The position numbers and the translations under genes were made by a program. From IMG/VR virus record IMGVR_UViG_3300043410_001892, positions 186,001 to 250,000 of that record: 64,000 nt of DNA. The stretch is one strand, 5' to 3'. Of this stretch, positions 181 to 37,259 are shown piece by piece. A model generated the notes under the pieces. That model did no database searches, had not been told where the DNA came from, and worked only from the letters and a program-made list of their open reading frames with translations. Each line of letters begins with the position of its first letter. The first letter of the stretch is position 1.

Positions 181-455
181 TTTAATTCCGTCCTTGCTAA
201 TTCTAAAAACATTTGATATTTTTCGTAGGCTTGTTTGACAGCTGGAACTTTTTCTCTAACAAACATATCTTCGTAATATGTTTTATTCCATTCTTCACAT
301 TTTTCAGCTTTCACTATTAACTCTTCAAAACTTCGTTGGTTTATCTTAACAGTTAGTAGTTGCTCATATCGATAATCATTGGCACTTATATAGTGTTGAT
401 CTAAACAAACTTCCCTAATTCCATATTTTCCAAATTTTTCAACTATATTAGACAT
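177..455 (-). CDS. hypothetical protein (probable start MSNIVEK at 455)
   Basis: TAATG stop/start overlap with the PRTase gene; C-terminal PAVKQAYEKY motif. Confidence 0.6.
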   Translation of the reverse strand: MSNIVEKFGKYGIREVCLDQHYISANDYRYEQLLTVKINQRSFEELIVKAEKCEEWNKTYYEDMFVREKVPAVKQAYEKYQMFLELARTELK

Positions 456-949
456 TATTTCTTCCAAAAGTCTTCCCAGGGAAACACAATCCAAGTATCT
501 TCTTCACGTTTGTCAATTTCTTCAACAGCAAAGTCAACTTCTACTGTACTACCTAAATTATTAAAGATTGTAGCAAACTTAACATTTTCATGCCAAACAT
601 TATCGGCCCATCTTGGATCAGTTGGTATACAATTTGATTGCCAATCTTGCATAATCCAGTTAAATGTTTCACCTGAATCGTTTATATCATCAACAATTAA
701 GATATTTTCAGATTCAAATGCATCGTTAGCTAACCAACAGTTAGATTCAGTATATACATGGTCACGTAAACTAACGTGTATTACGTACATCTTAATTCCT
801 AAGTATTGACTTAACATATTGGCGGGTGTAACCCCGCCTCTACTAATACCAATAATATATTCTGGAGTCCAACCGCTGGCATTAATTTGACGAGCAAGTT
901 CTAAAACTGCACCTTCAAGTTGTTGCCAAGAGTAATGTACTTTTTTCAT
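455..949 (-). CDS. type I phosphoribosyltransferase (xanthine/guanine PRT-like)
   Basis: IIGISRGG loop, PRPP-binding ILIVDDINDSGETF, C-terminal WIVFPWE as in Gpt-like enzymes. Confidence 0.85.
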   Translation of the reverse strand: MKKVHYSWQQLEGAVLELARQINASGWTPEYIIGISRGGVTPANMLSQYLGIKMYVIHVSLRDHVYTESNCWLANDAFESENILIVDDINDSGETFNWIMQDWQSNCIPTDPRWADNVWHENVKFATIFNNLGSTVEVDFAVEEIDKREEDTWIVFPWEDFWKK

Positions 950-2545: not shown

Positions 2546-2794
2546 TTAAGATTTTTTAAAGTTTTTTGGTCTAACGCCGTTAGGCCATGGTTTATTACCT
2601 TGATAAGGTTTACGTGGGCGTTTGCTTGCTAAATACGCACCGTATGATTTAGTGTCCTTGCGATATAAATCTGCTGGATCAAACTTACGCATTTCAATTC
2701 TACAAAAATCATGAAATGCTTCGAGATCTTCAAAGATCTTAACAACATCAGGACGTGATTCAAAGTATGAGAATGATTTGTAATTTTTAGCCAT
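2546..2794 (-). CDS. hypothetical basic protein
   Basis: ORF track, in operon order. Confidence 0.6.
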   Translation of the reverse strand: MAKNYKSFSYFESRPDVVKIFEDLEAFHDFCRIEMRKFDPADLYRKDTKSYGAYLASKRPRKPYQGNKPWPNGVRPKNFKKS

Positions 2795-2795
2795 T

Positions 2796-3005
2796 TTATT
2801 TTTTTCCGTTTCTTAATATAGTTGTATGGGTACGAAGTGAAAGTAATGTTTTTAATTCGTGCAATTCACATCTTAGTTTTGCTATTTTTGGATCGTTTTT
2901 TTTAGTATTATTGATGTAATAATATTTTTGTTCAAACAGTTTTATCTCTTGACGCTTTTGCTCAATCTTTTTTTGTAGCATTGTTTTAGATATATAATGT
3001 TTCAT
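2796..3005 (-). CDS. hypothetical protein
   Basis: ORF track; ATGA overlap with the upstream gene. Confidence 0.45.
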   Translation of the reverse strand: MKHYISKTMLQKKIEQKRQEIKLFEQKYYYINNTKKNDPKIAKLRCELHELKTLLSLRTHTTILRNGKK

Positions 3006-3364
3006 GAATATTTAATAAATGAACCATTTTCATTATCTTCAGATATTTCAATCCAAATCTCTCTATCTGAATATTTCTGTGAAATAGTTTGATGTAACTC
3101 ATTACTAATCATTTCACAGCTCTTATTATCTAGTGATAGTATAGCATCACTATACAATAAAGTCAACCAACGTTTAAATTGGATAAACTCAATATCTCTG
3201 TCAGCGTGTGTAACTTCAATCCAAACTTTAAAATGAAATATATGTCTATGTGGATATCCTAAGAACTCTACATCCTCTAATTTTGGATCAGTTAGAGCAG
3301 CAGGATAACAGTGTATTCCTTCTTTTGAAAATGTGACAAAAATAAATTTGCTAGTTGTTTCCAT
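3002..3364 (-). CDS. QueD-like T-fold protein, DpdL-like (putative 7-carboxy-7-deazaguanine decarboxylase)
   Basis: LGYPHRHIF fits the LxxxHRHxF signature I recall for DpdL; SCEMIS and EISEDNENG resemble the QueD C-terminal motifs; next to the TGT-like gene. Confidence 0.65.
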   Translation of the reverse strand: METTSKFIFVTFSKEGIHCYPAALTDPKLEDVEFLGYPHRHIFHFKVWIEVTHADRDIEFIQFKRWLTLLYSDAILSLDNKSCEMISNELHQTISQKYSDREIWIEISEDNENGSFIKYS

Positions 3365-4034
3365 GTTTTTTCTTATTTTGATGTGCTAAAAGTCTAGCCT
3401 CTGACCAAGGTTTGCCTTTCTCAGGGCCGGTTTTTTTTTGTGATTCTGCGGCTAAAATTCGTGCTTCAGACCACGGTTTACCTTTTAATGATTTACTTAT
3501 TTTTTCTTTATGAATATCAGTTAACATTACACCTGTTTTTGATTTACTAATTTTTAATTTAGTTTCATTACGATGTAACTTCCCCTCCATACCTGATTTA
3601 AGAGTTCCATTTTTAATTTTAGTTTCAATAATTTTCCGTTTAGTGTCAGCTGGCAATTTTTTACCTAAATGCGATTTTGATAAGTTTTTTCGATGCTCTT
3701 CACTCTTAACTCTATTCTTCCACGATGGCGGTTTGTTATCTAAACAAATGTTCGTTAATATGCCATTTTCTTCAAATCCAATTCTGCCGTATTTAAGAAT
3801 TTCTTCAGTTTCTAATTTGTAAGCGTCGTCTTCATTAATGATATTATCTATAACTTTTTTGATTATAGGAGGCATATTATGTTGAATTAAAAATTGTATG
3901 CGATAAAACTTATGACGATTTAACGTATTTTCTGCTGTTTCGGTTAAATGATCAAAACATCTGTTGGCTGTTCCTTTACCTATATAAAATGGTAAGTTAT
4001 CTCTAGGATCTATATAATGATAAATGTAATACAT
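3351..4034 (-). mobile_element. free-standing GIY-YIG homing endonuclease gene with NUMOD3-like repeats
   Basis: YIYHYIDPR...FYIGKG..R, conserved E and LTN; repeats SEEHRKNLSKSHLGKK, ETKLKISKSKTG, HKEKISKSLKGK; AGGAG RBS. Confidence 0.85.
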
Positions 4035-4051
4035 GGTATTCTCCTTGTAGT

Positions 4052-4090
4052 TTATTTATCAAACGTTACCCATATCATTTGCTGTTTCAT
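4052..4090 (-). pseudogene. 12-codon remnant (MKQQMIWVTFDK*) of the original 5' end of the DpdL-like gene
   Basis: MIWVTF aligns with FIFVTF at the N-terminus of 3002..3364; starts 2 nt after the upstream stop. Confidence 0.6.
4053..4060 (-). promoter_or_regulatory. T4-like late promoter motif upstream of the endonuclease
   Basis: GATAAATA about 20 nt upstream of the ATG. Confidence 0.5.
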
Positions 4091-4092
4091 AT

Positions 4093-4620
4093 TTAACTCT
4101 TTAATGTATCGTTGTTGTAAGCATCCCAACCTGTAAACATATTAGGATTTTGTAATGTCTGTAAACTATGTGTCCAAATACCTGGATTAGTTGCATTAAA
4201 TGTAACATCATCGAGTTTAATCATAGTATTAGTATTCCATTTGTGTATATTTGCAATTGGCATTCTAATTTGTGGAATAAACTTTTCATATGAGCATAGC
4301 TCAGTTTTTACATTAAAGTCATTTAATACAGTATATGGAATATCTAATGAACAAGTTTTACCTGTTTTTAAAAAATACTCAATAGTATGAGCCCAAGACA
4401 TCCATGATCCGGCATTTTGTGGATTAAAGCTATGGTTTGCACCAAAGAATATATGATCTACATCGTCTTCAAGATATATCTCAATTGCTTCTATGGTTTG
4501 AATACCTACTACAAACAGTGTTTTCATACCGTATGCAGGTGTATGTTCTACTTCATTGCCTGTAAAAAACTTTACAGGCGTTGTAATTTCGTTTTTATAT
4601 GGTCTTATCATTTTTAACAC
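4093..4620 (-). CDS. hypothetical protein in the deazaguanine cluster
   Basis: ORF overlaps the end of the TGT-like gene; FTGNEVEHTP and HIFFGANHSF motifs; function unknown. Confidence 0.65.
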   Translation of the reverse strand: MLKMIRPYKNEITTPVKFFTGNEVEHTPAYGMKTLFVVGIQTIEAIEIYLEDDVDHIFFGANHSFNPQNAGSWMSWAHTIEYFLKTGKTCSLDIPYTVLNDFNVKTELCSYEKFIPQIRMPIANIHKWNTNTMIKLDDVTFNATNPGIWTHSLQTLQNPNMFTGWDAYNNDTLKS

Positions 4621-6253
4621 TTTCTTCTAAGTTAGTTAATACTTCTATTTGTTTTTCGGTAAACTCTTCAGAATCAACATCATCTTCGTTATCACCGAAG
4701 TCAAAATATTTATTCAATATTGTTTGATGGTTATAAATTTTAAGTCCGGTATTTCCTCTAGTACCAGGAATTGTCATCCATAGTCTATCGTATTTTTCAA
4801 TTATATCTAAAGATTCTTGTTTGTTCTTAGTTGCAAATATTGAATCAATTAGATCACGTACAATAATTGTATCATGAACTTCTTTTATTAGCATATTTGG
4901 AAATACATTATTGTCGTATGCTTGATTTGCCTCTTGTACAGCATTCACATGGCTCCAAACATTGTGACCCATTAAAATTGCATAACTAAAACTATCCCAA
5001 CTTGTTCTACCAACTTTGTTAACTTTATTAACATCGCCAAGTGTAATCCAATACTTAGGATCATTTAAGTATTTAGGGTCTTTAAATAACGCTACATGGT
5101 CAATATTATCAGCATTGACTTCTGTCCAATTAGGAACACCTTGTTTATAAATGCAAATATCTTTAATTTCTACTTGATCAATAATTGGACTAGATTTAAA
5201 TACATTAAAGATTTTATCTTGAATAACTGCATCTTTAAATAATCTAGTATCCGTTGAATATTTTTTATCATCAACGCTTGGAACCATTCGATAAACCCAT
5301 TTAGATCTATCTGTTAGTTCAGTATTGATGTATACTTGTCCATTTGCTGTAGCTAAAAACGGACTAGCACAATCATAACTAATTGTAAAGTTAGGATTAT
5401 GATATTTTCGTACTGCTCGTTGAATATCAGTTAGCAAACAAGCCCATTCGAGCTTGCTTGTTCCTAAAAAGTGCATCCAGTCTTGTTTTCCTTGTTCTAA
5501 TAAACCGTCATGTATAATAGTAATAAGTCTTCTAAGAACTAAGGATAAATCGCACATATTCTGACCACCCATTGCCCATCCATTAAATGCTTTATCGCCA
5601 TAGATGTTAGGATCACAATATTTTTTCATACGATCATACCAATCATTTGCATCATCGTGTGTTTCGCCTTGCAGTACATTAAGGAATTTACATTTACCAG
5701 TTCTATTTTGGATAAAGTATTCATTATTGATATCTGTACCTGCTACTGCATCAGCATATGAGTTAACACCTGTTGCCTTACGCCCAGCCGGGCTACGTGC
5801 TACCCAAGCCGGAATATCAAGACACATGCCATAATCCATTAGCTCATCCATCCAACGCAATACTTGTTCACGTTTCTTTTGTGCTTTAGGACAATTAGGA
5901 TTTTTCCAATCAGCTGGCCAGACACCTTTACCAATTTGGAATCCTCCTGAGTCGCCTAATACAAAACTTGTAGTTCTATCTCTGTTACGAAACATGTCTT
6001 CACTATCGTCAAACTTGTCTAAATCTAAGTTTGCATGTCCAGCTGAATACAAGCACCATTTATAATAAAATTGCCCTTTCTCTGGTTCCAAGTAGTTAAG
6101 ACTTTCTACACCTGCAGAAAAAGATGCAGGAATTCTTGCTGGATCTACATACTGATTATATCTCTGTTTTCCAATAAACGTAGCATAAAAGCCCGACGTT
6201 GCTGGTAGAAACACAGCGTAATCATTCTGTGTTGCTGTTAGGTTCCTGTTCAT
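4595..6253 (-). CDS. tRNA-guanine transglycosylase-family protein, DpdA-like (7-deazaguanine insertion into DNA)
   Basis: TGT motifs in the expected order: LGDSGGFQ, MCLDIP, NVLQG, AMGG, MHFLG, SYDCASP, GHN; located next to the replication genes and the DpdL-like gene. Confidence 0.8.
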   Translation of the reverse strand: MNRNLTATQNDYAVFLPATSGFYATFIGKQRYNQYVDPARIPASFSAGVESLNYLEPEKGQFYYKWCLYSAGHANLDLDKFDDSEDMFRNRDRTTSFVLGDSGGFQIGKGVWPADWKNPNCPKAQKKREQVLRWMDELMDYGMCLDIPAWVARSPAGRKATGVNSYADAVAGTDINNEYFIQNRTGKCKFLNVLQGETHDDANDWYDRMKKYCDPNIYGDKAFNGWAMGGQNMCDLSLVLRRLITIIHDGLLEQGKQDWMHFLGTSKLEWACLLTDIQRAVRKYHNPNFTISYDCASPFLATANGQVYINTELTDRSKWVYRMVPSVDDKKYSTDTRLFKDAVIQDKIFNVFKSSPIIDQVEIKDICIYKQGVPNWTEVNADNIDHVALFKDPKYLNDPKYWITLGDVNKVNKVGRTSWDSFSYAILMGHNVWSHVNAVQEANQAYDNNVFPNMLIKEVHDTIIVRDLIDSIFATKNKQESLDIIEKYDRLWMTIPGTRGNTGLKIYNHQTILNKYFDFGDNEDDVDSEEFTEKQIEVLTNLEESVKNDKTI

Positions 6254-17172: not shown

Positions 17173-18878
17173 TCCAATGTACAGTTTAATCCCTCCCGTG
17201 TGGCTTGAAATAAAGTTTTACCGTCTACAGTAATTTCTTCATCTACACCCGTTATTAGTTGGAAATTAATTTTGTCACCTAATTTAGCGTACTCTCTTGC
17301 TTGTGTGCTACTAACGTTTGTATCATTAGATCTGTCACCGCTACTGACAAACTTTAATACTACGTGTTCTCTACCATTTGGTCCTCGTACATAATCGGTT
17401 GTACGAGTTGGACCACTGTTCCAGTTATTTAATGCAGTTTCTAAACTATTATTACCTGGGCCTAACCTATCACTTCCTGCAATAAATGTCATGTGTCTAT
17501 AGCCTTTATCGTATAGCCAACATGCAGCTTTCCATGGATCTGTTACAAAATCTGACACTATAAATTCAGCATATTCCGGATGAATTTTCTTAATAAACTC
17601 AGTCTTAATATCGTAATTTAATGGATCATGTTTTGGATCACATTTGTTACTAGCAAAAATATACGCATGATTCTTACCAAGATCTACAGTTTGTTGCATT
17701 ACTTTTGTATGTCCAATAGTCGGCGGATTCATTCTACCAAAGCAAAAAACTGCCATTGGCATATTGCTTTTTGTTTCAATTTCTTCCGCTGGTATTTTGT
17801 ATTTTGAAAAGTTAGCACGACTAAATTCTAACCGATTAATGATCTTTAATTTATCATTACCGGCTCCTATTACATAGCCTTCGTGACTTATAATACTATT
17901 TATAATAGGTTGAACGGCACTGTGCAGTTGTTGCTCGTCAATCTGTCGTTTAATATCTAATTTAAGATTAGATATAGCACTCCATATTGCCCATAATCCT
18001 ATTATACCTCTTTGAATATCTGCATTAAAACTGCCATCTTTTCTACACAGTTTTTCTCGTACACTATGGGTAAATCGAGGCTGTGCAAATTCTAAAAACC
18101 GTTCAACAATATTAGTTTCCATATCACCAGAGTTTATCATTTTAGTAATAAATGGACTCATTGCTGCAATTATACATTTGCATTTAGCCGTAGTAATTTT
18201 AGCAATACAAGCGTCTACGTTGCTGGAATGCGTTGTTATTGCATCTTGTGCGCGTAAAAGTAATGTGTTGTTTACTGTTATATTTGGTTTATTAGGCATT
18301 TGAGTTGCAATAAATGTGATATCTTTGCAATTTGAAAATACATCAAACCCTGTAATAGGTTCGTCGGCTGCGTTTAGCCCTGGAAAGAATGTGTGTACAG
18401 CAATACCGCCTACACTATTAGAAATTGATTGTCCTAAGTCACTATTACAATCGACATGATATTCAACAGTGTTAGGTTTAAAGATAAATTGATTGTTAAT
18501 ACAAGTAGGAGTTCCTGTCCATAACAAATCACCCATATAATACGTGTCTGTTACTTTTGGAATAATATTTTCTAATGCAGGACGTAGAATATCTTCTTTA
18601 GCCCATAAGTCGCTACGTAATGAATTTCGAGAATTGTCATAATCTCGAATAGTTGTAAAGTCAAGTTTGCCAGCAGCGATTTGTTTAAACATGTGTTTAT
18701 CAACAAATACTAAATTACCATTTGGATCTCGACCAAAAACTATTGCAGGAAAGCCATCCCATTTAATAGTTAATGTATCAGTGTTAAAAGAAAGACTACT
18801 TAGTTCATTAACTGCTCTCTGAGCTCCTTTAGATCCTTCTAAAATAATTAGATCTTCAGGGTGTGCAATTCCTGCCAT
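17169..18878 (-). CDS. fusion of a ligase-like nucleotidyltransferase domain (DUF6267-like) and a HIGH-class cytidylyl/adenylyltransferase
   Basis: N-terminal IKWDG, GDLLW, HEGYV, KLKII; C-terminal FGRMNPPTIGH, AGSDR, SSTQAR. Confidence 0.7.
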   Translation of the reverse strand: MAGIAHPEDLIILEGSKGAQRAVNELSSLSFNTDTLTIKWDGFPAIVFGRDPNGNLVFVDKHMFKQIAAGKLDFTTIRDYDNSRNSLRSDLWAKEDILRPALENIIPKVTDTYYMGDLLWTGTPTCINNQFIFKPNTVEYHVDCNSDLGQSISNSVGGIAVHTFFPGLNAADEPITGFDVFSNCKDITFIATQMPNKPNITVNNTLLLRAQDAITTHSSNVDACIAKITTAKCKCIIAAMSPFITKMINSGDMETNIVERFLEFAQPRFTHSVREKLCRKDGSFNADIQRGIIGLWAIWSAISNLKLDIKRQIDEQQLHSAVQPIINSIISHEGYVIGAGNDKLKIINRLEFSRANFSKYKIPAEEIETKSNMPMAVFCFGRMNPPTIGHTKVMQQTVDLGKNHAYIFASNKCDPKHDPLNYDIKTEFIKKIHPEYAEFIVSDFVTDPWKAACWLYDKGYRHMTFIAGSDRLGPGNNSLETALNNWNSGPTRTTDYVRGPNGREHVVLKFVSSGDRSNDTNVSSTQAREYAKLGDKINFQLITGVDEEITVDGKTLFQATREGLNCTLE

Positions 18879-19289: not shown

Positions 19290-19298
19290 ATATTTATA
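19290..19298 (-). promoter_or_regulatory. T4-type late promoter TATAAATA
   Basis: exact TATAAATA about 22 nt upstream of the ATG at 19268, heading the 10.7-19.3 kb block. Confidence 0.6.
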
Positions 19299-27164: not shown

Positions 27165-27311
27165 AATAATATCCTAAAATGTTTATACTTATTTATCTTG
27201 GTTCGAAATCATACAGTATTTCTTTGTATTTGGCGAAATGCCAGTAAATATATGTGTAGCGACCATGTCGCTGTGGTTGTTACTATTCTAACATAACTAG
27301 GAGTTACCTAT

Positions 27312-31574: not shown

Positions 31575-31598
31575 ATATAATCTCCTTTAGTTTTATAT

Positions 31599-32108
31599 TT
31601 ATCTTAAAAAATCATGCCAATCTAAATTATATTTGATGCTATCAATTTTATGCACACCTAGCAAATATAAAACAAAACTTGAAACGCTTGAGCCTCTCCC
31701 AACTCCCCAGACAACATTATTTTCTAAACAAGTATCTATAAAGAATTTAAGCCATTGAAGAAGGTGCATCATATTTCTATTCTTAAATTCAGTTAGTTCT
31801 TCGTGTACACGGGTAGTTTCAATAGTTGAGTTACATTTAGCTATGCAATAAGATTCTACATCAAAATTATAGTAATAATCAGGCATAAACCATTCATTTT
31901 GATTTAACATGTCATATTCTTCAATTGACAATGAGTTTACAGATTCATCAAATTGATGAATTTCAATTTCTGATACGGTTGATAATTGTGAAATTTCGTA
32001 ACATTTTTCGGTTACAATAGTAGTTAATGGGATTTGATGCCCTGCGTACAAGGCATCAAATATGTCTTTTTTATTAAAAATTGGATTTGAAAATTTGTCT
32101 GTTCTCAT
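31599..32108 (-). CDS. stand-alone fragment resembling the DNA polymerase III alpha (DnaE) palm region
   Basis: RVHEEL...WGVGRGSSVSSFVLYLLGVHKIDSIKYNL..DFL matches the DnaE GRGS region; ends before PDxDxD. Confidence 0.7.
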   Translation of the reverse strand: MRTDKFSNPIFNKKDIFDALYAGHQIPLTTIVTEKCYEISQLSTVSEIEIHQFDESVNSLSIEEYDMLNQNEWFMPDYYYNFDVESYCIAKCNSTIETTRVHEELTEFKNRNMMHLLQWLKFFIDTCLENNVVWGVGRGSSVSSFVLYLLGVHKIDSIKYNLDWHDFLR

Positions 32109-32955: not shown

Positions 32956-35324
32956 ATGTTGTTCCTGTTATTAGTGAATATAATGTATTTATCAGCATAT
33001 TTGTTTGAAGATCGAATAATAATTCTATCTATCAAATAATCTAATAAATTAAATTTAAAATTACTGTGTTTGATATTAAGTAAAACTTGATCTGCAGATC
33101 CAACTTTACAATAACACAATGGAACTGCTAAAGTATATCCAAGTTCTGTCCGTGTGTTTGGTTGAATTGATCTCATCCACAGGGGTAATAATTCATTGTC
33201 TGTCGTACTAATTAGACTTAAACTCTGTTGCCATCTTGTTACACTACTTGGATAATACGTGTTGTTATTGACAATAGTATTTCGTGATAAATGATTTACT
33301 AATGAATCAATTGGATCGATCATGTGAATATAAATTACCTCATATACTGCTGTATGTGTACCAGGTATCAATGCTACAGCTTTCTTTACTTCACCAAATC
33401 GAAATCTTTTATTTTTATAATTAGTCTGCATTTGATTAATATAATCTGATACATCGGCTTCTTGTATACCTGCATAAATTAACATTGATAAATCTGTTTG
33501 CACACCAAATGCACGATCGTATGGACGATATATTAAATTTGGTTCAAAAATCGATTGGTTTGTAATAAAGCCATCCCACAATATTCTATCATTAAGATCC
33601 ATAAATGGTTTAACTACTACATTATCAAAGTTTGAGTGTGTAGGTGTTTTTATAGTTATTGAGAAGGTACGTTCAGTTGCGCTGTAATAAAACTGATCAC
33701 GTGCTTCAACTGTAAATTTAAATTGCCGATCAATTGTAGTTTCACCGCCATCATATATTGTATCAGTGTCTAATCGATAATCAAATGTAGTCAATCCCTT
33801 ACGACTAAATTGTTTATCAAATGTAGTAGTAGGTGATTGATCAAATGTAGTAAGCCCGTCATCCATCGCCGGAATTGAAATTACTGTTGTGAATTTAGTA
33901 ATACCGTTAATGTTAAAGGTAGTTTCTCCATTATCAAAACTAATTAAAGTCGTCTTTACATCAAAATAGGTATCATCACTATCAAATCTTAAATTACTTG
34001 ATAATAATGGAACTACTCCCATTATTTCACCGTCATATGACATAGTTAGCCCTGGCGGTAATGAACCAGCAACTACTGAATGAATTACTACAGCATCTTC
34101 AATTGTACTTGTTGCCTGTACACTAAACATCGATGGATAATCAGTTCGTATTTGTCCTAAATCGTTAGATCCAGCCCAAGTAATAACACTGTCTATTTCA
34201 CCGATAAGTTTAACAGTAAAGGTTCTCGAAGAACTATTAGTTTCAGTTTTATTCTCATCTCCGTGGGTTGATGCTGTTACTGTAAATGAGTAGGTAGTTG
34301 TAATAGCAGGCTGGTATGGAACATAACCATATATTTCACCAGTGATAACATCAAATGACAATCCAGTAGGTAATTTTGTAATATCATCAATTGAATAGTA
34401 AACTATACCAACGCTATAAACATCTAAAACTATAGTAACATAATTATTAGCTCGATATGTTCCTAAGTCACTTGGAGTAATCCATACTGGAGCTTGTAGA
34501 TATGTTACATCAGCTGTAAACAACCCAACATTTGAAATTAATTCGTCAGCATCTGCTCTAAAATAATCTTCGTTAACTACATATATTTCAAATTTACGTT
34601 TTGGAGTTAATATTCCATCTGTAACAGAAACAATAAATTCAAATTTACGATTAATAGATTTAACTTTTCGTACAGCAAGATAATCGTACACTGCATAATC
34701 AAATGGAATAGTATCATAACCGTTTTGTTTTGGAGGAATAGCAAAGTCAAATGGGCCTACATCGTAATAACCGTTGTCATATGATCCAGATCCGCTTGCT
34801 GGTGTGATTGCAGTTACTTCGTTAACAACACCAACAATTCTACCATCAGGTGTTAGTGTAAGACCTGATGGTAATTCTCCATCACCTCGATTAATGAAAA
34901 AAGATATTTCTTGTCCTGCAGATAAATCGTAATCAATTGCATTGAGTTGATAATTTACAACCGAATTATCAATTACAAATAATTGTTTTGCAGGACCAAT
35001 ATCAAGTAATCCAGCATTAGTTAGAATAATTGGAGCATCTGGCCCAACAACTGTTACTTCAAATGTTCTGTCAGCAATTAAATTATTGTATTTTGCACGA
35101 ATACAAAAGTTATAGATTGTATCATCTGTTACTTCAACTGGTGCTCCGATTAGTCGATTTCCTTGTAATTTTAGGCCGCGAGGCAACGACCCAGTTATAA
35201 TTGAATACGATACATTCAAATCGTCAGTTACTGGTAATTTTATATCAACATCAATTCCCTCGGCGAGGGTTTCAAGGTTAATTTTATTTAAGGTGGAATT
35301 TTGTGTCCAAACATTAAGTGCCAT
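32952..35324 (-). CDS. putative baseplate protein with repeated Ig-like (He_PIG-type) domains
   Basis: four GxLPxGLx(L/F/M) repeats; TTFD repeats; upstream GATAAATA. Confidence 0.6.
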   Translation of the reverse strand: MALNVWTQNSTLNKINLETLAEGIDVDIKLPVTDDLNVSYSIITGSLPRGLKLQGNRLIGAPVEVTDDTIYNFCIRAKYNNLIADRTFEVTVVGPDAPIILTNAGLLDIGPAKQLFVIDNSVVNYQLNAIDYDLSAGQEISFFINRGDGELPSGLTLTPDGRIVGVVNEVTAITPASGSGSYDNGYYDVGPFDFAIPPKQNGYDTIPFDYAVYDYLAVRKVKSINRKFEFIVSVTDGILTPKRKFEIYVVNEDYFRADADELISNVGLFTADVTYLQAPVWITPSDLGTYRANNYVTIVLDVYSVGIVYYSIDDITKLPTGLSFDVITGEIYGYVPYQPAITTTYSFTVTASTHGDENKTETNSSSRTFTVKLIGEIDSVITWAGSNDLGQIRTDYPSMFSVQATSTIEDAVVIHSVVAGSLPPGLTMSYDGEIMGVVPLLSSNLRFDSDDTYFDVKTTLISFDNGETTFNINGITKFTTVISIPAMDDGLTTFDQSPTTTFDKQFSRKGLTTFDYRLDTDTIYDGGETTIDRQFKFTVEARDQFYYSATERTFSITIKTPTHSNFDNVVVKPFMDLNDRILWDGFITNQSIFEPNLIYRPYDRAFGVQTDLSMLIYAGIQEADVSDYINQMQTNYKNKRFRFGEVKKAVALIPGTHTAVYEVIYIHMIDPIDSLVNHLSRNTIVNNNTYYPSSVTRWQQSLSLISTTDNELLPLWMRSIQPNTRTELGYTLAVPLCYCKVGSADQVLLNIKHSNFKFNLLDYLIDRIIIRSSNKYADKYIIFTNNRNNI

Positions 35325-35413
35325 ATTTGTTCTCGTTTTTAGTATTTATCCTTTAATTTACTTAATGCAGACTCCCATAATAACCGTACTAAATACAGTA
35401 TCATATAGGAATA

Positions 35414-36952: not shown

Positions 36953-36971
36953 AAACTCTCCTTTTAATTAT

Positions 36972-37259
36972 TTATAAATGCCCTAGTGTCTTAAGACTAC
37001 TTACTGGCATATCCCATATCTTTCTTCGTTCTACTCCTTTTTCTTGAGCAAATCGTTTAGTGTCACAATTCTCACAAACATGATAAACTTCATTTGTTAG
37101 TCGTTGAGGTGACATTGACCCTTTTTCTCTTTTAAAAATTGTACTGCATTTATCGCACCTTAAGACTACCATAGATTTTTTTCGAGAATAAACATGGTGT
37201 TTACCTAATTTGCTAGTACGATAATACTGTGTAAGTTCGTATTCAATAGATATAATCAT
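36972..37259 (-). CDS. putative zinc-ribbon protein
   Basis: CDKC...CENC. Confidence 0.55.
   Translation of the reverse strand: MIISIEYELTQYYRTSKLGKHHVYSRKKSMVVLRCDKCSTIFKREKGSMSPQRLTNEVYHVCENCDTKRFAQEKGVERRKIWDMPVSSLKTLGHL

Follow-up and report, generated by a model that had tools for sequence, protein, structure and literature searches.

'Intronless homing' is a name introduced for SegF, one of the free-standing GIY-YIG endonucleases SegA to SegG of phage T4 (PMC2988022). The seg and mob genes of T4 are intergenic, with cleavage sites located hundreds to thousands of bp away, and where a T4 endonuclease gene harbours the promoter of a downstream gene, this is believed to explain its retention (PMC2988022). 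This article addresses a GIY-YIG cassette found within the coding sequence of a phage gene, dpdL, in a 64,000-nucleotide (nt) stretch of DNA (hereafter the window) that corresponds to positions 186,001 to 250,000 of IMG/VR record IMGVR_UViG_3300043410_001892, a complete virus record of 372,173 bp with terminal repeats from a freshwater metagenome. According to the reading preferred here, to which we give a probability of about 0.8, this cassette inserted in dpdL after codon 10 and brought a substitute start for the gene, the old start being left as a stub.

Like the T4 seg genes, the endonuclease gene of the window is free-standing, lies beside a conserved phage gene that is its likely target and is patchily distributed among relatives. 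It follows a late-type promoter motif, would spread through break repair with co-conversion of flanking markers, and has expression signals of the downstream host gene embedded in its own sequence, which would favour its retention. Unlike the seg genes, it lies inside a coding sequence, with its likely target at the insertion point, and its cassette duplicates a part of the host gene, of which it supplies the start codon and the first 12 codons.

Other described systems share some of these features. In Aeromonas phage Aeh1, nrdA is split by mobE, as summarized in PMC8351571 (citing Friedrich et al. 2007) and drawn in PMC2988022. As in the dpdL locus, a free-standing endonuclease thus sits in a phage coding sequence without any intron and the host function is retained. 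Both pieces of the Aeh1 gene are said, in the 2007 work of Friedrich and colleagues, to be expressed and to assemble into the enzyme with no coding duplication, whereas the upstream piece of dpdL is a dead stub of 10 codons and the downstream piece is completed by a duplicated and altered 5' end. In fungal mitochondria, partial duplicates of the atp9 N-terminus occur with free GIY-YIG genes (PMC7487136), and elements in nad4, cox1 and cob of Tremella carry foreign partial copies of the host gene that displace the original (PMC7315562). There too, a foreign host-gene segment takes over, the original is left as a pseudogene fragment and the segment is replaced by horizontal transfer. A hybrid atp6 gene of Allomyces is also reportedly known from work of Paquin and colleagues in 1994. 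However, the fungal cases concern eukaryotic organelles, involve mostly 3' or C-terminal replacements or in-frame fusions and have not been shown to form a conserved target-specific clade; the dpdL cassette resides in a phage, replaces the 5' end and the start codon with a start that overlaps the endonuclease gene, and includes a conserved stub-promoter element. Finally, the endonuclease I-TevI of the T4 td intron has an operator that resembles its homing site and overlaps its late promoter (PMC2988022). Similarly, the dpdL cassette has a partial copy of its putative homing site just 5' of the endonuclease, where the stub abuts a predicted nATAAATA late promoter; but I-TevI is intron-encoded, and its operator is a look-alike rather than a leftover of the target gene.

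The interrupted dpdL locus

All the genes in this part of the window are on the minus strand. Their order, from 5' to 3', is a family-B DNA polymerase gene, three open reading frames (ORFs) of 246, 136 and 552 amino acids (aa), a 175-aa ORF, a mini-ORF, a 227-aa ORF, a 120-aa ORF and more small genes. The features of the interrupted gene are as follows.

4093-4620, minus: 175-aa gene, from the ORF list and synteny with contigs L001 and L003
4052-4090, minus: mini-ORF MKQQMIWVTFDK and its stop codon, made of the stub and three cassette codons (GAT AAA TAA)
4061-4090, minus: host-derived stub MKQQMIWVTF, the original codons 1-10 of dpdL, with the Trp codon TGG kept
3329-4060, minus: inserted cassette of 732 nt (promoter-like motif, ribosome-binding site, endonuclease ORF, replacement dpdL 5' end)
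4053-4060, minus: motif GATAAATA, resembling T4 late promoters, within the conserved element TGGGTnAnnTTTnATAAATAAAC; putative promoter of the endonuclease gene
4041-4046, minus: AAGGAG ribosome-binding site of the endonuclease gene, 6 nt 5' of its ATG
3351-4034, minus: intact ORF of a free-standing GIY-YIG homing endonuclease of 227 aa with NUMOD3 motifs, ATG at 4034
3329-3364, minus: replacement dpdL 5' end METTSKFIFVTF, with TTT (Phe) in place of TGG (Trp)
3002-3364, minus: dpdL, 120 aa, full length and intact

The 175-aa ORF (4620-4093) ends with the stop codon TAA, followed by two bases, AT, and by the ATG of the mini-ORF, which reads ATG AAA CAG CAA ATG ATA TGG GTA ACG TTT GAT AAA TAA. 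The 3' end of the mini-ORF is GATAAATAA; AAGGAG comes next and then the ATG of the 227-aa ORF. The GGAG of this ribosome-binding site is kept in most related cassettes. The 120-aa ORF, which reads METTSKFIFVTFSKEGIH, begins at 3364 and so shares 14 nt with the end of the endonuclease ORF (3351-3364). Of the 732-nt insert, the endonuclease ORF takes up 684 nt, leaving just 48 nt for everything else. The guanine-plus-cytosine (GC) content of the cassette is 30.3%, versus 34.5% for the window.

The stub is the former start of dpdL. The closest endonuclease-free homolog of the 120-aa protein (P0002, about 81-82% aa identity) begins with MKQRMIWVTFSKEGIH and, on its contig (L001), dpdL starts 2 nt past the stop of the 175-aa homolog, which is the place occupied by the stub in the window. 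The first 30 nt of the stub are identical to the 5' end of the L001 dpdL at 27 positions, with the same offset from the upstream stop. When the DNA of the window is aligned with L001, identity runs through ...GGGTAAC(G/A)TTT, no homology is found over 732 nt, and the match resumes from ACATTTTCAAAAGAAGGAATACA; homology ends after GTAACGTTT and resumes at ACATTTTCAAAAGAAGG. The edges of the cassette are sharp and both lie at an F codon, the insertion being located after codon F10 (TTT), with an ambiguity of 6 nt at the right edge, where ACATTT is common to the host allele. Joined to the dpdL body at this F codon, the stub gives MKQQMIWVTFSKEGIHCYPAALT, which differs from P0002 by one residue over the first 16. 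The host's own part of the mini-ORF extends only from 4090 to 4061, through codon F10. The next codons, GAT AAA TAA (D, K, stop), belong to the cassette, because the related locus L007 shares the junction of TTT with GATAAATAAACTAC whereas endonuclease-free relatives have SK or KK.

Other endonuclease-free relatives agree with this assignment. The proteins P0005 and P0010, which start with MTDKQMIWVTFKKEGIH and MTEHKMIWVTFKKEGIH, respectively, are encoded directly after the 175-aa gene on fully syntenic contigs. From the polymerase to GTP cyclohydrolase I, the 20-kb contig L003 displays gene-for-gene synteny with the window; it has no endonuclease, and the stop of its 175-aa gene is overlapped by dpdL (MTDKQMIWVTFKK...). 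In the endonuclease-free relatives, dpdL thus directly follows the 175-aa gene, either 2 nt past the stop or via an ATGA overlap. An earlier note, based on the letters of the window and its ORFs, had reported the mini-ORF 2 nt past the 175-aa stop, its coordinates, the overlapping dpdL start, the motif and the ribosome-binding site, all accurately to the base. It had anticipated that endonuclease-free homologs would start like the stub, as P0002, P0005 and P0010 do right after the 175-aa gene, and it had placed the cassette about 10 codons into the gene, where it indeed lies. One refinement is that the stub, although it is the old dpdL start, is not merely a scar: the stub-plus-promoter element is conserved in all the cassettes.

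The 227-aa protein matches the Pfam family PF22945 (LEM-3-like GIY-YIG; 27.3 bits for a cutoff of 27) and PHROG 314 'homing endonuclease' (E = 3.7e-16), and carries NUMOD3 (PF07460; E = 8.4e-07, 29.3 bits for a cutoff of 20.4) as a C-terminal DNA-binding module. Its N-terminus (residues 2-31) matches GIY-YIG chains in PDB. Residues Y3, Y5, Y17, G19, R25, H29, E68, E75 and N95 are invariant among 25 endonuclease homologs, and the Tyr, Arg, His, Glu and Asn columns among them, typical of the GIY-YIG core, are presumably catalytic, as in I-TevI. No second copy of the endonuclease gene was found in the 372-kb genome. At this fixed site, the endonuclease is patchily distributed, being absent from the syntenic contigs L001, L003 and L135 and present in the window, L007 and L018.

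Mobility and relatives of the cassette

No DNA nearly identical to the locus was found in GenBank phages, and relatives were therefore taken from metagenomes. Both junctions of the arrangement found in the window are bridged by contigs from three other samples, belonging to two other studies. The nearest homolog of the endonuclease (P0122, 86% identical) is encoded by L007, which has the same layout as the window, with a stub MTEHKMIWVTFDK followed by a stop codon, a 14-nt overlap and a new start METTNKFIFVTF. The cassettes of the window and of L007 share about 89% identity, as against about 70% for the genes on either side. In a sliding comparison of the window with L007, the cassette (4087-3338) is 88-95% identical, versus 55-83% for the 175-aa gene and about 70% for the dpdL body; the new dpdL starts are identical at 33 of 36 nt. 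An extended co-conversion tract in the dpdL of the window was considered and rejected, since some 30 nt away from the F codon the identity to L007 is already down to background.

The closest endonuclease-free relative of the window is too distant for a finer mapping of the tract, and the L018/L135 pair was therefore used instead. The dpdL bodies of L018 and L135 are about 98% identical, but the 5' 75 nt or so of the L018 gene are foreign, and the stub located 5' of the L018 endonuclease (...KQDWRPNKMIWVTF, then a stop codon) is homologous to the native start of L135 (...RQDWRPNKMIWVTF). L018 and L135 are a near-isogenic filled and empty site, and the cassette is a discrete transferable unit that has moved. 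In the source sample itself, a 527-nt contig (run X1, record 4) has a gap of 246 nt between the 175-aa gene and dpdL instead of 945 (window 3164-3214 and 4160-4200). An endonuclease-free relative co-occurs in this sample at about a tenth of the depth of the carrier phage.

A survey of the family, carried out by profile searches of loci fetched from IMG/VR and JGI metagenomes, yielded about 25 distinct related cassettes on phage and metagenome contigs, in which the stub-endonuclease-dpdL layout recurs. With the endonuclease profile, all the loci that reach a score of 218 bits or more and have enough downstream DNA carry dpdL directly downstream or, in one case (L176), a divergent T-fold relative, whereas none of those below 190 bits does so. 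The gene located upstream of the cassette differs from locus to locus (175-aa type, HNH gene, ADH_N and others). In the junctions that could be read (window, L007, L008-10, L018 and L011), dpdL starts inside the end of the endonuclease ORF, with an overlap of 14 nt in L007, L008-10 and L018 and of 4 nt in L011. In a tree built from dpdL bodies, the alleles with an endonuclease are dispersed among those that lack it, which requires about five changes of state.

Some loci of the survey display additional features. In L008 and L009, an HNH_3 endonuclease gene (L008:849-1283, L009:421-855) lies directly 5' of the GIY-YIG cassette and its dpdL stubs, so that a single dpdL 5' end bears a stack of two homing endonuclease genes of different kinds. 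In L176 (83-763 plus some 160 nt on the downstream side), the usual stub-promoter element is present in a cassette that precedes a divergent T-fold gene (...MSFIKVRAEFEGFHFYPNA...EHRHMF) that begins with a dpdL-type MTVIKQDVRP start; this looks like an ectopic jump giving a chimeric N-terminus. A more distant GIY-YIG relative (159 bits) found in L067 (1842-2750), where dpdL is not its neighbour, has the same 17 nt, ATGGAAGATATCACAAT, as an exact direct repeat on its two sides and is preceded by GTAACATTTTGATAAATAG, which resembles a dpdL stub and promoter. A DNA scan for flank duplication at distant endonuclease relatives in other genes, covering 54 loci, gave this one clear case, the rest being background, and the design is therefore not generalised beyond the dpdL clade.

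Putative target site, stub-promoter element and alternative explanations

Among endonuclease-free dpdL alleles, 73 of 76 distinct ones have the Trp codon TGG in the motif xIWVTF, while 20 of 21 distinct endonuclease-bearing alleles have TTT, TTC or TAT at this position (Fisher p = 4.6e-9, for the first data set alone and uncorrected for phylogeny). The core peptides of the latter are FIFVTF, FIYVTF, FIYVKF, MIFVTF, K/T/M/S-IFVQF and AIYVQF. As a duplicated 5' end beside an intact gene body would rebuild the full target, it needs some alteration, and the W-to-F/Y change is likely to be an immunity change. In the stub, TGG is preserved, but the right half of the proposed site is missing. Three Phe-type alleles devoid of both endonuclease and stub are known (L005, L094 and L173). 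In L094 (1941-2060), the first 13 aligned codons are identical to the new start brought by the L008 cassette, and the dpdL body groups with Trp-type alleles (support 95/93); this allele probably results from a short conversion tract without gain of the endonuclease, or from a clean endonuclease loss. An immune patch without the endonuclease is what would be expected from break repair that did not copy the endonuclease gene.

These comparisons suggest the following mechanism, in which cleavage, homing and immunity through W to F/Y are read from allele comparisons. During a mixed infection, the endonuclease would cut an endonuclease-free dpdL in or near the conserved ATG-ATH-TGG-GTN-ACN-TTT ... 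AAA-GAA-GG, with a predicted cut near TGGGTAAC-TTT. The break would be repaired from the endonuclease-bearing genome, the gene body serving as the right arm and the stub, with any shared upstream gene, as the left arm, so that stub, endonuclease and new start would be copied in together. The new copy would start at the ATG located within the last codons of the endonuclease gene, in frame with the resident gene body, and the original first 10 codons would stay upstream as a dead stub. Because the cassette brings its own copy of the first 12 codons, dpdL would survive without splicing. The carrier would remain uncut, the stub lacking the right half of the site and the left half of the new start being altered (TGG to TTY or TAT, often ACN to CAA). 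As dpdL starts inside the endonuclease ORF, a clean loss of the endonuclease would damage dpdL, which would favour retention; dpdL expression would also be coupled to that of the endonuclease. In this regard, the earlier note had proposed a recoded duplicate 5' end that would probably destroy the cleavage site. The replacement 5' end does travel with the cassette, as the comparison with L007 indicates, but it is not a synonymous recoding: it is the 5' end of a natural Phe-type allele, with W changed to F. The loss of the putative site gains comparative support from the distribution of TGG and TTY/TAT; the late-promoter reading of GATAAATA is supported by the position of such motifs relative to ORF starts (below), and the DpdL-like label by the signature and database match given in the last section.

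All of the roughly 25 distinct cassettes carry a version of the stub-promoter element 5' of the endonuclease gene, none being without a stub or a degraded copy of it. In most of them, the element is AT(A/T)TGGGTYAGTTTY(C/A)ATAAATAAACATAAGGAG, that is, a stub encoding IWVSF(H/N)K and a stop, then nATAAATA and the ribosome-binding site; degraded forms alone are found in a few more distant cassettes (L013, L016, L019, L185 and L192). Several loci (for example L008/L010, L018 and L011) have a second, host-derived stub before the cassette-borne one. Comparison of 15 cassettes shows that, in the element TGGGTYAGTTTYnATAAATAAAC, 19 of 27 positions are conserved at 90% or more, for a mean DNA identity of 71% between the endonuclease ORFs of these cassettes, and nATAAATA lies at the same place in the approximately 25 cassettes. 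On the minus strand of the window, seven of the eight [TG]ATAAATA sites are 16-30 nt 5' of an ORF start; the sites beyond the cassette are at 17897-17904, 19291-19298, 36969-36976, 27190-27197, 31596-31603, 32986-32993 and 35343-35350, and six of these seven fall within this distance. Furthermore, TATAAATA is depleted in the window (3 found for 12.3 expected), as expected of a functional signal. This suggests T4-type late promoters in this jumbo phage. By analogy with known systems, the stub has probably been co-opted as an endonuclease promoter, and may perhaps also act as an operator of the endonuclease gene, as in I-TevI.

Several points weigh against this reading. A more distant endonuclease lineage (L019, L196/7) keeps Trp while bearing the endonuclease, and the target site is deduced solely from positions that differ between alleles. 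The well-supported branches of the dpdL tree force only one origin of the endonuclease-bearing alleles, so that their scatter is suggestive but not conclusive, and the association with the Trp change is not phylogenetically independent. The conservation of the stub is only modestly above that of the endonuclease ORF (81% versus 71% mean pairwise identity). The motif GATAAATA is not enriched across the window (6 found for 6.3 expected), and the promoter reading therefore relies on where such motifs lie with respect to ORF starts and on their conservation from cassette to cassette. No clear Shine-Dalgarno sequence precedes the new ATG of dpdL, whose expression in this arrangement is assumed. Finally, splicing, although unlikely, is excluded only indirectly: the sequencing runs listed in a search of all kinds of run look like DNA, and no RNA-only search was made.

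The same structure could result from an ordinary intergenic endonuclease located upstream of a natural Phe-type dpdL. The replacement start would then be the 5' end of the donor gene, acquired accidentally through co-conversion, and the stub a functionless scar left by a single illegitimate left-hand join and inherited since, neither the stub nor the overlap having any role. This explanation accounts for the natural look of the new 5' ends and for the existence of the endonuclease-free, stubless Phe-type alleles. It also fits L008, whose new start is homologous to a natural start over its whole length, L018, whose foreign tract continues for about 25 nt beyond the F codon, as would be expected of co-conversion, and the decay of host-side stubs, which have undergone a frameshift in L008, lack the Trp codon in L016 and are reduced to a fragment in L013. 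However, not one of the approximately 25 distinct cassettes is without a stub, and a neutral scar should decay faster than the ORF, whereas the stub-promoter element is more conserved than the endonuclease. Furthermore, L008/L010 and L018 have different host starts followed by the same cassette end, which indicates that the stub travels with the element and counts against the scar, so that this alternative appears unlikely.

A self-splicing group I intron or another removable element, with the stub as a real first exon, is a far less probable explanation. Phage GIY-YIG endonucleases are often intron-encoded (PMC2988022), and the stub, in phase with its ATG, lies directly after the upstream gene like the true start of relatives. 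Against this, a search of Rfam, including group I introns, over both strands of 2700-4500 gave no match even at E = 1, and the endonuclease ORF almost fills the insert. The junctions fold no better than shuffled controls (z = -0.44 and +0.66), and it is therefore not claimed that a hairpin masks the ribosome-binding site. Wherever a downstream dpdL could be read (21 distinct alleles), the endonuclease is followed by an entire gene, in frame and with an ATG of its own, in which the first codons are present a second time, and stubs with frameshifts, deletions or no ATG at other loci indicate that they are not kept as coding exons. As for a chance likeness of the mini-ORF to a dpdL start, it could be envisaged as long as the alignment covered six residues only, in a window of 34.5% GC. 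It is refuted by the 27/30 nt match to the true start of L001, at the same offset from the upstream stop, and by recurrence in about 25 distinct cassettes, and its probability is negligible. The insertion of a cassette that replaces the start of dpdL thus remains the preferred reading.

The dpdL gene, its genomic company and the significance of the cassette

The 120-aa protein has more than 8000 metagenomic homologs of 114-148 aa and keeps all of their 51 invariant columns, but a Pfam search assigned it to no family. Its sequence FLGYPHRHIF fits the signature LxxxHRHxF, which DpdL has in place of the CxxxHGH of QueD (Hutinet et al., PMC10516641), and L35, H39, R40, H41 and F43 are invariant in the alignment of dpdL homologs. 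DpdL is a QueD paralog and a proposed decarboxylase of 7-carboxy-7-deazaguanine, although heterologous expression yielded no dDG (PMC10516641). By tblastn, the 120-aa protein matches phage ACP17, whose dpdL was tested in that work together with that of one other phage, with 55% identity over 95% of the protein (E = 1e-34), and phiST with 31% identity (E = 5e-5); both matches are presumably the genes named dpdL in PMC10516641. It is therefore proposed, from sequence comparison, that the 120-aa protein is DpdL, the QueD paralog and putative 7-carboxy-7-deazaguanine decarboxylase.

The genomic company expected of DpdL comprises FolE, QueD, QueE and DpdA, in the absence of QueC. As in relatives, genes for GTP cyclohydrolase I (FolE) and a radical-SAM protein lie 2-4 kb beyond the start of the window. 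The neighbouring genes are given below (L175 corresponds to C1:179001-186200 of the genome).

L175:6255-6986: GTP cyclohydrolase I
L175:5803-6246: 147-aa ORF
L175:4726-5568: radical-SAM (QueE-like) gene
window 455-949: phosphoribosyltransferase
window 10085-7425, minus: family-B DNA polymerase
window, between the polymerase gene and the 175-aa ORF, minus: three ORFs of 246, 136 and 552 aa

The genes flanking dpdL would fit a module for the modification of DNA with 7-deazaguanine. The transglycosylase could be the 552-aa neighbour (window 4595-6253), for which Pfam and PHROG searches gave no match; the same searches gave no match for the 175-aa protein. A 69-aa ORF located just 3' of dpdL (window 2796-3005, minus) is variable, being absent from L007, and positions 2795 and 3000 are a mere 5 letters apart in contigs of runs X3 and X4.

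A limited literature search gave no description of a phage endonuclease that replaces the start of a gene, which is not proof of novelty. With this proviso, the design of the dpdL cassette would be a form of intronless homing new for phages, with partial precedents in fungal mitochondria. A broader proposal, which we regard as tentative and rather doubtful, is that these cassettes form a distinct, 'start-replacing' class of homing endonuclease elements, with an immune 5' copy of the target gene, a functional and portable stub acting as promoter, operator and left arm, a dependence of dpdL expression on the endonuclease, tandem stubs that would testify to successive invasions, and jumps to divergent paralogs as in L176. 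If so, a conserved coding sequence would be colonised without splicing, and the stub would work as a left homology arm whatever the upstream gene.

Homing endonucleases have been viewed so far as entering phage coding sequences either as part of self-splicing introns or inteins or through the division of a gene into two functional pieces, other free-standing homing endonucleases being located between genes. The present locus and its approximately 25 relatives point to a third route, in which the element would cut near the start of a gene and bring a new, cut-resistant start. With such an arrangement, a free-standing endonuclease would find homology for its two flanks in every phage that carries the target gene, whatever the neighbours of this gene. 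For annotation, it would account for mosaic 5' ends and for short orphan ORFs located 5' of endonuclease genes, and the comparison predicts which compact natural sequence would be the target of a new GIY-YIG enzyme. It would also link phage biology to the partial gene duplications long seen beside endonuclease genes in fungal mitochondria. More largely, a selfish element may in this way spread an amino acid variant, W to F, through a DNA-modification gene that has more than 8000 metagenomic homologs.

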